Assembly: GCF_028641065.1 (NCBI RefSeq)
Contig: NW_026576109.1
Coordinates: 62,001-126,000, forward strand
Direction: 5' to 3'
DNA length: 64,000 nt
Origin: Leucoraja erinacea
Lineage: Eukaryota
Position 1 is the first letter of the stretch, and each line of letters opens with the position of its first letter. The notes beneath the pieces were generated by a model. The model had not been told where the DNA came from. It ran no database searches and worked only from the letters and a program-made list of their open reading frames with translations. Of the stretch, positions 1 to 58,418 are shown in pieces. The translations under genes were made by a program, and so were the position numbers.

Positions 1-35
1 TCCCTGTGCTAGTATCACAGTCGTCATCAAATTAG
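1..35 (-). CDS. GPR139/142-like GPCR gene A, start of exon 2 (continues beyond window start)
   Basis: Minus strand: polypyrimidine tract plus CAG acceptor (38-36), then (G)CT AAT TTG ATG ACG ACT GTG ATA CTA GCA CAG GGA = ANLMTTVILAQG. This matches the start of exon 2 of gene C (ANALTIVILAQG). Confidence 0.85.
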
Positions 36-824
36 CTGTGGACAGAGGGAGACAGATTGTGAGTAGTGATGAAACGAACGTCTCAAGCCTCGCCACCACC
101 TAGTTTTCGGTCAGTATATGTGTATTTTCTTTAAGTATCCATTCAAGAACGTTCTATGTCAATGAAGTAAATTTACTTAACGTAAATAACTTAATTAAAT
201 TGTATTTAAGTATGTAAGTATTTTCTGGGGAAAGTATTCGTTAATGTGGCCCTTTTTCAATGGATACCTGTTTGCTGACGCGATCATGCAGCTACGTTAA
301 TAACTCAATGGAAACCTTTTTCCTTTGCATGTTTCGTTCAGTTTAGACACGGATTTCTGGAATGACTAGGCGGGGCAGGCAGCGTCTCTGGAAAGATGGA
401 ATGGGTGATGTTTCGAGTCGAGACCCTTCTTCGGATTGCAAAGGCGAAACGGATATTGATCTGTGTTTTAGAAGGAACTACAGATGCTGGAAATTCGAAG
501 GTAGACAAAAATGCTGGAGGAACTCAGCGGGTGCTGCAGCATCTATGGTGCGAAGGAAATAGGCAACGTTTCGAGCCGAAACTCTTCTTCAGTATTGATC
601 TGATCGTTTTCAAGTGCCGAATTATGTTAAACATAAAACTCGGGTAGTTGCAATATCTCATCAAGTGCGAGCCACAGTTTATTTTAGAAACACAGCGGGG
701 AATCAGAACCTTCGGCCCACCAAATCCGCGCCGTCCAGTGATCGCCGAGCAGCAGCAATATGCCACACATATGGGACAAGTTAACATTTTTGCCGAAGCC
801 ATCATACTAGCAACTTGTACAACC

Positions 825-972
825 CACTTTGAATGTGGGTGGAAACCGGAGCTCCCGGAAGAAACCCACGCGGTCACGGTAAAACCAACAGACTCGGTAC
901 AGACTGCACCACGAGACAGGATCGAACCCGGGTCTCTGGCGCTGAAAGGCAGGAGGGCCACCGGCCCGCCGC
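825..972 (-). mobile_element. HE1/V-SINE-type tRNA-derived SINE (partial)
   Basis: CAGCGCCAGAGACCCGGGTTCGATCC B-box followed by the V-domain-like GCGTGGGTTTCTTCCGGGAGCTCCGGTTTCC. Homologous to 33896-34225. Confidence 0.75.
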
Positions 973-992
973 GAAAATAAGGTAATAGCTTT

Positions 993-1064
993 GAATGACC
1001 GGGATTTGCACCTGAACATGTATTGGATCTTAAAGCCAACGCCTTAACCACTCAGCCACCCTGC
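993..1064 (-). pseudogene. Degenerate tRNA-Leu(UAA)-like sequence in the intron of gene A
   Basis: GGTGGCTGAGTGGTTAAGGCGTTGGCTTTAAGATCCAAT resembles the D arm and anticodon arm of vertebrate tRNA-Leu(UAA). The T arm (GGTGCAAATCC) and acceptor stem are degenerate. Confidence 0.6.
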
Positions 1065-54533: not shown

Positions 54534-54874
54534 TAAGGGCACTCACATTTCAGTAGACATGTGGTCAGTGTTATTCACAGTTCAGAGAAACGTAACCCTC
54601 TGCCTTCCTCCATCTTGAAGAGTGAGTGAGGCACGCCACTTCCTCGTTTTATAGTCCCTCTGCTGCCAGCGGGGGCAGCAGAGAGAATGGGGAATTTTGT
54701 AAAAACATTAATATCTCTGTCATTGTTCATCGACGGGAAAGATCCTCGGCACACATGCGGCGGAGGGGTGCTCTGAGCAAGGTGGCCAAAATGACGGCCG
54801 TAGGTGGCGGCGTTTTCTCGGAAATCGCAGCACAGACGGCCAAAAGCAGTCAAGAACAGAGATTTAGTAATATA

Positions 54875-57473
54875 CTAGACCAAGTGCAGACCCGTTGGGT
54901 CTGCTCCCCAAATGTTGTGATCCCCCAACCCAATATTCCACCATGCACCCGTCTCCTCCAATGGAACTGAAGCCGTTCTCAAAAGTAAGATTCCAGCACT
55001 GCCCTGCCTCCCTCAGCAGTGGATTAAAAAACAATCCAATGGCACCTACTCTGCCTGCTGCAGCAGTTAAAAGTTCAGAGTGTTCCTGTCTTGCAACTTT
55101 GTTTCGAAGTGCGTTGGAAGCTGACATGTAAATGGAGAAGCCAGTTTATTCTTGAAATACTTGGGGGTGGGGGCGAGTAGGATTTGATTAAAAACGTGTA
55201 CTTCAGCACGACGAAATGTAATGAGGGGCGGATACTTAGAAAGAAAAGCGAAATCTCTACCGAAATGGAAAAGATCTCGGAGATTGAGCGTCTGGATTGG
55301 GCGTGGCAATGAATCAAAGGAAGAAATGCAGCCGGCAGCCGTACATGCAAATGGATCCATTCCGATTGGACATCTGCGAGCATCGGCCATTCCGATTGGA
55401 CATCTGCGAGTTTCGGGCACGAATCAAAAGGCAGAAAGGGATCCGGACGGCAGCCGGANNNNNNNNNNNNNNNNNNNNNNNNNNNNNNNNNNNNNNNNNN
55501 NNNNNNNNNNNNNNNNNNNNNNNNNNNNNNNNNNNNNNNNNNNNNNNNNNNNNNNNNNNNNNNNNNNNNNNNNNNNNNNNNNNNNNNNNNNNNNNNNNNN
55601 NNNNNNNNNNNNNNNNNNNNNNNNNNNNNNNNNNNNNNNNNNNNNNNNNNNNNNNNNNNNNNNNNNNNNNNNNNNNNNNNNNNNNNNNNNNNNNNNNNNN
55701 NNNNNNNNNNNNNNNNNNNNNNNNNNNNNNNNNNNNNNNNNNNNNNNNNNNNNNNNNNNNNNNNNNNNNNNNNNNNNNNNNNNNNNNNNNNNNNNNNNNN
55801 NNNNNNNNNNNNNNNNNNNNNNNNNNNNNNNNNNNNNCGATGGGTCCCATGTTCACACGGGAGGGCTGGCCTCCCAATGCAATATTCCACCTCTTCACCA
55901 ATTAATATATTGGTAGCCAGTGGGGGGGGGGGGGTTCTGGAGGGCTAGTATGGGTATTGTGGGCTGAAGGGACTGGTTGCAAGAGGGCTAGTATGGACAT
56001 TGTTGGCCAAATGGATTCTTGGGGTGACAGCTCAGTCACTCAAGCCTGATATGCTGGCAGATCACTCACGGCTGGAGGGCGAGCAGTTTCAAGCAGGGTT
56101 CATGGCTACCAAATTCAATTGCTGTTTCATACCACTTCAAGCAGGGTACAAGGCTACCACATTCAGGTGCAGTTTCCTACCACTTCAAGCAGGGTGCAGG
56201 GCCACCGAATTCAAGTGCAGTTTCCTACCACTTTAAGCAGGGTGCAGGGCCACCGAATTCAAGTGCAGTTTCCGACCACTTCAAGCAGGGTGCAAGGCCA
56301 CCAAATTCAAGTGCAGTTTCATACCACTTTAAGCAGGGTGCAGGGCCATGTAACTCAAGTTCAGTTTCCTACCATTTCAAACAGGGTGCAGGGCCACCAA
56401 ACTCAAGTGCAGTTTCCTACCACCAAGCAGGGTGCAGGGCCACCAAACTCAAGTGCAGTTTCATGCCACTTCAAGCAGGTTGCAAGGCCAACAAATGCAA
56501 GTGCTGTTTAATGCCATGTCAAGTAGGGTGCAAGGCCAACAAATTCAAATGCAGTTTCATACCATTTCAAGCAGGATGAAACCACCATAAAACCACCATA
56601 AAACCACCATAAAACACTACACTCACAGTTGAGTAGATATTCAGTGTGTTCAGTTGATTCACACCTCAGACAGAGTAGTGACCTCTCCCTCCCCCAACGT
56701 GCAGAGACAGAGCCACACCCATACTTCCAGGTTTTATTATCCCACCCCCTCCCAAAGGAAAGGGTGTGGCTTTCATGGCGTGATTGACAGGAGAGAGATT
56801 CTCAACATTTTTAAAAACTCTAAAAACACCTTTATTTTTAATTGATGGGAAGAATCATCTGCACCTGATATGCAGGGGACTGAGTAAGATGGCCAAAAAT
56901 CACAGCCGTAATTCGTAGCGTTTAATCTAAAATCAATCTACATTGCAAACAGGAAGTTGTCAAGTTACCACCACCAACAACCATTGCAGTGCAGCATTTC
57001 AAAGCAGTTACCACCACCAACAACCATTTGCAGTGCAACATTTCAAAGCAGTTGCCACCACCAACAACCATTTGCAGTGCAGCATTTCAAAGCAACCACA
57101 TTTTCATTTCCAAATCACATTAAGGGCACTCACAGTTGAATGGACACGTGTTAAGTGTTATTCACAGCTCAGAGAGACGTGACCCTCTCACTTCCTCAAT
57201 CTTGCAGAGACTGAGTGAGGGACATCACTTCCGGGTTTTATAGTCCCTCCCTCCTCCCACCAGCAGGGGCGGCAGAGAGAATGTCAACATTTAAAAAATA
57301 TTAATAACTCTTTTATTTTTCATCGATGGGAAAAAAATCGTCGTGTACTACGCAACGGAGCGGGACTCTGAGTAAGATGGATAGAAATCACAGCCGTAAG
57401 TGGCATTGTTTCTTCAAAAATCATGAAACAGGAAAACAGGAAGTGGTCAAGATCTTACTTTTAGTAATATAGA
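54875..57473 (-). mobile_element. Non-autonomous Helitron with internal minisatellites (contains an N gap)
   Basis: 5' TCTATATTACTAAAA at 57473. 3' hairpin GCAGACCC-AAC-GGGTCTGC, then ACTTGGTCTAG at 54875. An approx. 43-bp repeat at 56085-56575 and an approx. 32-bp repeat at 56965-57095. Confidence 0.72.
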
Positions 57474-57844
57474 TAGATACGGAAAACAGTAAATAGTTGT
57501 TTTGGAGTGTTGAACTTTGAGAGGGGACCATGTGACTTACCTTCACCTCACAATTTAGTCCTAAGGAAAGGCCTAGAGCTTCAGTAGTTTTATATGTCGA
57601 ATCATTTCATTGTTCGGAGTCGCAACCAATTATATTTTCAGATGTGATCAAATTATTGCGAGCGGATTGGATAATTGCAAGCGGCCTTAATTTTCATTTG
57701 GTGGATGGAAGCTGCAAGCTGATTGGATGCTTCATTCGAAGCCAGCAGCGACGCAATAATCAGCGAGGCCGGATATCGCATAGTATCTTCACTGCAAACA
57801 ATTTCAGAGTCAATCCTCTTTGTTCAGGACGGTCGCCGGCCGAC

Positions 57845-58379
57845 ATGTTCGCAGTTCTTGCTCATTTGTTTTATTTCGCTGTAGCTCTTTTCACAAGTAA
57901 GCTCGCAAAGTATACGGTTTCCCTTATCACGTGTCGCTGATATCGAAAACCTCCCCGCCGGCTACTTCGACTTTGATCTATCTCAGTTGAATATGTCCAA
58001 CCTCTCCTCGCGAATATTGGGCTGTATTAATTTAAAATACAAAAATGTTGATGTGTTTTTAAATTATTGCAGGTGTCGTTGCCATAGACTCAGTCTCACA
58101 GGAACCGGCTAACTTGACGCCGGTGGAAGGAGACTCGGCGAAAATTAACTGCAGGTATTCAACTACTGCTGATATGTATTCTTTGCATCTGTACCGTCAG
58201 AAACCGAACAGTGGTTTCACCTTCCTGATTCTCATCCCATCCTTCGGAAACATTTCCAGGGCACAAATTGTGGGTCCTCGAATTTCAGCGTCCCTCGACA
58301 CTTCGAGAGGCGAAAGTTCATTCACCCTGGCTGGAGTGGAGCTGACTGACGGAGCCGTATATCACTGCGTGCTGAGAGA
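57845..58379 (+). CDS. TCR alpha/delta-type V segment V5 (leader 57845-57896; V exon 58073-58379); conserved Trp replaced by Leu
   Basis: Leader MFAVLAHLFYFAVALFT. V exon DSVSQ..INCRY..HLYRQ..DGAVYHCVLRD. Confidence 0.9.
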
Positions 58380-58418
58380 CACGGTGCCACTATCCATGAG
58401 CGGCCTCGTACAAAAACT
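58380..58418 (+). promoter_or_regulatory. 23-RSS of V5
   Basis: CACGGTG + 23 bp + ACAAAAACT. Confidence 0.9.

Follow-up and report, generated by a model that had tools for sequence, protein, structure and literature searches.

GPR139-like receptor genes among antigen-receptor V segments of the little skate

How do genes for G-protein-coupled receptors (GPCRs) come to lie between antigen-receptor variable (V) segments, and what happens to them there? The question is raised by a 64,000-nucleotide stretch of little skate (Leucoraja erinacea) DNA (contig NW_026576109.1, positions 62,001 to 126,000, referred to here as the window), which is carried on an unplaced 208-kb scaffold and contains three two-exon, GPR139-like class A GPCR genes together with five V exons. 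Previously, a few olfactory receptor (OR) genes were known to lie among the T-cell receptor (TCR) V segments in mammals, where they occupy the distal end of the locus; here, in a cartilaginous fish, it is a different GPCR family whose genes are found among V segments. We find the interleaving to be real, and it is probably ancient. We consider it likely that the window belongs to the V region of the skate TCR alpha/delta locus, or of a wider antigen-receptor complex, and that the GPCR genes embedded in it are old passengers.

Interleaving of receptor genes and V segments

The elements of the window follow one another in the order GPCR-A(-), GPCR-B(+), V1(-), GPCR-C(+), V2(-), V3(+), V4(-), V5(+) (Table 1). 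The original prediction had listed these eight elements in this order and orientation, and all of them were recovered by Pfam, tblastn and the mapping of recombination signal sequences (RSSs). It had also named scaffolding across N gaps as a way in which the interleaving could prove false. The region has six such gaps, all of them intergenic and none overlapping a feature, with the closest approach being the 60 nt between gap 4 and the V3 nonamer. CT-rich simple sequence lies on either side of gap 1 and a GA run lies at the right of gap 5. The gaps leave the gap-free blocks A, B, V1+C, V2+V3, V4 and V5, and five of the seven adjacencies are therefore dependent on scaffolding. V1 and GPCR-C, however, share a single gap-free block of 17.5 kb, and V2 and V3 share another. 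These two adjacencies are independent of the gaps, and so neither the interleaving nor the mixed orientation of the V segments is a scaffolding artefact.

All five V exons matched the Pfam V-set domain and have open frames with both cysteines (Cys23 and Cys104). In each, a heptamer, a 23-nt spacer and a nonamer directly abut the coding end. At the chosen threshold, six 23-RSS-like sites were found in the window compared to 1.24 +/- 0.97 in shuffled sequence, and five of these join a V exon with no base in between. A tblastn search with 150 V-like proteins recovered no V exon in the window beyond these five. The best single-domain PDB chains were TCR alpha/delta for V1, V2, V3 and V5 and immunoglobulin heavy-chain variable (Ig VH) for V4, and among the proteins related to V3 is one from a catshark that bears the name 'T cell receptor alpha chain ...-like'. 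VH-like V segments are known to be used by TCR delta. The GPCR genes are thus interleaved with RSS-bearing V segments, as had been proposed, and these are mostly TCR alpha/delta-like.

Canonical split leaders were found for V1, V3 and V5, and Trp41 is present in V1 to V4. The five V segments could be aligned with one another at framework positions only, and for this reason look like distinct V families. V2 and V3 stand head to head within one gap-free block; as the mixed orientation is real, some of the V segments must join by inversion. No support was found for V2 or V4 as a leaderless 'supporting' V in a NAR-TCR cassette, with no further V-set exon upstream of either. Just upstream of V4 lies a motif, MFLC..., of which other copies occur in repeats throughout the window.

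Table 1. Features of the window, with positions counted from its first letter. A slash within a splice site marks the junction.
Feature	Position	Strand	Details
GPCR-A exon 2 start (ANLMTTVILAQG...)	1..37	-	acceptor ...tccacag/CTAATTTG (cacag/CT); runs off left edge
GPCR-A exon 1, 70 nt (MHAPGKGPVFAVYYTALAVFGVP + 1 nt)	4359..4290	-	donor GTAAAC; tblastn with N-termini of 80 family members, best E 4e-11
GPCR-B exon 1, 70 nt (MSAILVEWVKPVYYPCLALIGVP + 1 nt)	18118..18187	+	donor GTAAGT
GPCR-B exon 2 with stop codon	20631..21517	+	acceptor ctcctag/TG; DRF and SSCTN motifs
V1, TCR alpha-like	30341..30810	-	leader 30810..30756; intron 89 nt; V exon 30666..30380; 23-RSS 30379..30341 (heptamer at 30379, CACACTG; nonamer ACAAAAACG)
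GPCR-C exon 1, 70 nt (MHAPGNGPVFAVYYSALAAFGVP + 1 nt)	34875..34944	+	donor GTAACG; 100% match to XP_055522165 residues 1-23
Decayed long interspersed nuclear element (LINE) reverse-transcriptase fragment, GPCR-C intron	35929..36384	+	two in-frame stops; weak RVT_1 match, E 0.069
GPCR-C exon 2, open seven-transmembrane (7TM) reading frame	38152..39131	+	acceptor position 38150-38151 reads GG
V2, TCR alpha/delta-like	44584..44929	-	V exon 44929..44623; 23-RSS 44622..44584 (heptamer at 44622, CACAGCG; nonamer ACGAAAACT)
V3, TCR alpha/delta-like	48417..48934	+	leader 48417-48462; intron 129 nt; V exon 48592-48895; 23-RSS 48896-48934 (heptamer at 48896, CACACTG; nonamer ACAAAAACT)
V4, Ig-VH-like	51741..52081	-	V exon 52081..51780; 23-RSS 51779..51741 (heptamer at 51779, a perfect CACAGTG; nonamer ACAATAATT)
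V5, TCR alpha-like	57845..58418	+	leader 57845-57896; intron 176 nt; V exon 58073-58379; 23-RSS 58380-58418 (heptamer at 58380, CACGGTG; nonamer ACAAAAACT)

The GPR139-like receptor family and its members in the window

GPCR-B and GPCR-C both scored above the Pfam 7tm_1 gathering cut-off of 30.5 bits (68.7 bits, E 7.5e-19, and 64.8 bits, E 1.1e-17, respectively) and carry variants of the canonical class A motifs (VNLLAIV, ATADL, FDRF and SSCTNTAIY in GPCR-B; FDRF and SSCTNSCIY in GPCR-C). The first exons were located by placing N-terminal sequences from about 235 relatives on the window, and exon 1 is 70 nt in GPCR-A, GPCR-B and GPCR-C alike. The intron falls within transmembrane helix 1 (TM1), just before N1.50, and the splice sites of the three genes are canonical with the sole exception of the GPCR-C acceptor. 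Only 37 nt of the main exon of GPCR-A are inside the window, and this exon 2 start matched the beginning of GPCR-C weakly in tblastn. The family is recognised by a 70-nt exon 1 ending in GVP combined with CGLSKC-ITRYL at the start of exon 2, and the receptors of the window belong to it. The original description of DRF and SSCTN motifs and of two exons is correct, and the receptors are indeed not ORs: they are GPR139-like class A receptors, whose relatives are called 'probable GPR139' by NCBI.

The closest relative of solved structure is human GPR139 (E about 3.9e-10 to 3.4e-9, 40 bits), with an alignment that spans TM1 to helix 8. Both proteins are without the proline of the NPxxY motif, which reads NFFLY in GPR139 and N-T-A-I-Y in the skate protein. 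They differ in that GPR139 has DRY where the skate protein has DRF, the similarity at 40 bits is remote, and the skate family has more than 1000 shark and ray relatives at 90% clustering. In a collection clustered at 90%, 1919 relatives of GPCR-B and 1162 of GPCR-C were found at E <= 1e-5. Among the best 120 relatives with a source name, all were from a shark, skate or ray and nearly all were named 'probable GPR139', with which the Atlas agrees. The family has hundreds of paralogues per lineage. True GPR139 is described as a single, highly conserved gene (PMC12208981). Because the match is remote and the paralogues number in the hundreds, while true GPR139 is a single conserved gene, the skate receptors are not GPR139 orthologues. 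The paucity of GPCRs in cartilaginous fish has been stressed (PMC8455134), and our literature search returned nothing on a shark GPR139-like expansion, nor on GPCR genes in cartilaginous-fish TCR loci. The elasmobranch GPR139-like family is apparently undescribed in the literature searched.

From its sequence, GPCR-B looks intact and functional. It contains no stops and no frameshifts, and deviates at 6 of 76 family-conserved positions, with all six changes conservative, compared to 2 of 76 for GPCR-C (positions conserved in at least 90% of 215 family members, which themselves deviate at a median of 2 and a 90th percentile of 5). The best match to GPCR-B in the protein collection was a Pristis 'probable GPR139' at 69%. 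As the collection holds no identical entry, GPCR-B is apparently unannotated.

GPCR-C is annotated, since positions 38160-39128 are 100% identical to XP_055522165 (P0121), the L. erinacea 'probable G-protein coupled receptor 139'. In this assembly the exon-2 acceptor at 38150-51 has GG in place of AG. The Amblyraja orthologue (P0237, at least 90% to GPCR-C) has the canonical junction GVP/ANALTIVILAQ. As this copy reads, the exon-2 splice acceptor of GPCR-C is lost; in other respects the exon is well conserved. The NCBI model uses the end of the intronic LINE fragment (36307-36384) as a coding exon, corresponding to P0121 residues 23-48, and enters exon 2 at a cryptic site, with the result that half of TM1 is missing. 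A copy of GPCR-C that is 98% identical, XP_055522141 (P0236), is found on a second L. erinacea scaffold of 208,695 bp. This copy has kept the canonical exon-2 entry point, and its model likewise borrows coding sequence from an intronic LINE reverse-transcriptase fragment. Given the lost acceptor, the LINE-borrowing models are probably annotation artefacts. The two scaffolds, of 208,102 and 208,695 bp, may be two haplotypes of one region, in which case the acceptor defect would be an allele. Two annotation problems are thereby flagged: GPCR-B is absent from the protein database, and the models of GPCR-C and its 98% copy contain transposon sequence.

One independent DNA run and three RNA runs were mapped to positions 34800-39200. 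The DNA run covered GPCR-C exon 2 at about 10x with a few differences and was without usable cover at 38150-51. The three RNA runs, of unspecified tissue and with one read to about 5%, gave zero depth on GPCR-C exons 1 and 2, and RNA coverage of this interval, at very high depth, was confined to the repeated (transposon) parts of the intron. The zero depth on the exons is weak negative evidence on expression. The suggestion that TCR enhancers drive these genes in thymocytes gained no support from these runs.

Age and linkage of the neighbourhood

GPCR-B and GPCR-C are 41% identical. In a tree of 79 proteins, for which midpoint rooting served for drawing purposes only, they occupy the two deepest branches; sharks and batoids are present in each clade. 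The exons were used separately, and the tree was built from exon-2 translations only. Because of this divergence, and because the V segments align at framework positions only, the copies are ancient and are not recent block duplicates. A co-expansion of the GPCR and V families had been predicted; with both the GPCRs and the V segments of the window old and divergent, a recent joint duplication is unsupported and co-expansion is not shown.

Pristis, Amblyraja and Hypanus each carry members of the B clade and the C clade together on a single chromosome-size contig (57.79, 59.89 and 48.89 Mb, respectively), and both clades share little skate scaffolds of 0.208 and 0.170 Mb. The family is present on many other chromosomes too. 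Two checks showed accession order to follow sequence order: XP_055522161, 163 and 165 are the three GPCRs annotated on this scaffold, and four Pristis genes fall within XP_051882913 to 882930. On Heterodontus contig 59,489,666, the V-like proteins XP_067869829 and XP_067869992 bracket the GPR139-like XP_067869934 in accession order, and XP_067870069, 870071 and 870098 follow. On Mobula hypostoma contig 135,896,713, the V-like XP_062915810 is within 23-43 accession numbers of five GPR139-like proteins. This indirect evidence suggests that the V/GPCR neighbourhood is common to a shark and a ray. Being apparently shared in this way, the neighbourhood would be very old.

Probable passenger genes and the alternatives

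The simplest explanation would make the GPCR genes passengers in a duplication-prone V region. GPR139-like genes of an elasmobranch-expanded family sit between the V segments and represent two anciently separated clades; every gene has a 70-nt first exon of its own and presumably a separate promoter. The place of these genes between V segments would be old, common to skates and probably to rays and sharks. A T cell using a V segment on the far side of a GPCR gene would delete that gene, and use of a V segment in the opposite orientation would invert it; such somatic deletion or inversion follows from geometry only if the scaffold is in cis with the diversity (D), joining (J) and constant (C) segments. 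A functional TCR link of the GPCRs is not demonstrated, which would match the ORs among the distal mammalian TRAV segments.

The parallel drawn in the original prediction with the ORs of the mammalian TRA/TRD locus holds. The genes concerned are OR10G2 and OR4E2 in human and Olfr1507-1509 in mouse, placed at the first TRAV segments: between TRAV1-1, TRAV1-2 and TRAV2 in human, and between TRAV1 and TRAV2 in mouse (PMC4574546). In mammals as in the skate, class A GPCRs unrelated to antigen receptors lie between TCR alpha/delta V segments, and the mammalian arrangement is kept across species. The skate genes differ in being GPR139-like, with two exons and a 70-nt first exon, and whereas the mammalian ORs are at the distal end, the skate GPCRs, judged by the window, lie deep among the V segments and belong to at least two divergent clades. 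An elasmobranch antigen-receptor complex has been described that includes TCR alpha/delta, Ig heavy-chain (IgH) clusters and alpha/delta-type V exons scattered between the IgH clusters (Flajnik et al. 2025, PMC12227049, in the sections consulted). The window resembles what those sections describe in having alpha/delta-type V segments with 23-RSSs beside the VH-like V4, and GPCR genes are unmentioned in the same sections.

Several observations weigh against a working V region with the GPCR genes as its passengers. For V2 and V4, no leader exon was recognisable within 700-900 nt; that of V4 may have been displaced by a transposon. V5 has Leu at position 41 (LHLYRQ where V segments have W-Y-R-Q, 58156-58173) and may be an 'ORF'-class V with poor folding, and full function may be confined to V1 and V3. 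For this unplaced scaffold, cis linkage to D, J and C segments is not shown. The linkage seen in other species is one of shared contigs and accession order, not of coordinates. Passenger status is also a default reading, with expression data that cover GPCR-C only, in three RNA runs, and leave room for lymphoid or chemosensory expression.

Some of these points would equally suit an explanation in which the V segments are relics or orphons within a GPCR cluster of a wider antigen-receptor complex and are unused for TCR chains. The leaderless V2 and V4, the missing Trp41 of V5 and a scaffold without a link to J or C in the assembly are consistent with this, as are the alpha/delta-type V exons between IgH clusters in the sections consulted of Flajnik et al. 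2025 (PMC12227049). We nevertheless regard it as unlikely, with open frames, both cysteines and good 23-RSSs in all five V exons and canonical split leaders in V1 and V3.

It is highly improbable that the embedded GPCRs are lymphocyte-expressed under control of the TCR locus, with V(D)J recombination clonally altering which receptors can be expressed. What points to such coupling is position only: GPCR-C and the V1 leader stand head-to-head, 4.1 kb apart, in a neighbourhood that appears conserved in shark and ray. GPCR-C, however, has a broken acceptor and drew no reads on either exon, and the family occurs on many chromosomes without known TCR genes. The mammalian ORs in the same position are not known to be T-cell genes. 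We give scarcely any credence to an assembly artefact, in which separate GPCR and V contigs, or collapsed haplotigs, were mis-scaffolded across N gaps: although the region, on a small unplaced scaffold, is split by six gaps into six blocks, and the 98% identical GPCR-C copy on a scaffold of nearly equal size suggests haplotigs, V1 with GPCR-C and V2 with V3 occupy gap-free blocks, and V-like and GPR139-like proteins occur on the same chromosomes in chromosome-level assemblies of other species. Least credible of all is that lymphocyte-expressed GPR139-like genes are deleted or inverted by V(D)J recombination to give clone-specific receptor sets, which would couple antigen-receptor choice to a variegated GPCR repertoire.

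The arrangement offers a synteny marker for rebuilding the fragmented elasmobranch TCR alpha/delta region and a natural setting in which to ask how duplication-prone DNA is shared between V arrays and multigene families of receptors. It is also a test case for whether genes inside a recombining locus can be lost somatically without cost.

Other elements of the window were repetitive or transposon-derived. An Rfam scan of the window found no RNA families. Between GPCR-A and GPCR-B there is a LINE (13502-16643, +) with an uninterrupted open reading frame (ORF) of 827 aa (RVT_1, E 3.4e-31), which may be young or still active; a 281-aa ORF that overlaps it from upstream had no Pfam match. Two minisatellites lie between V4 and V5, at 53766-54532 and 56088-56575, and long spurious ORFs arise from both. 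One has a 29/60-nt unit in about 25 copies with 79% match, and the other a 48-nt unit in about 10 copies with 86% match.

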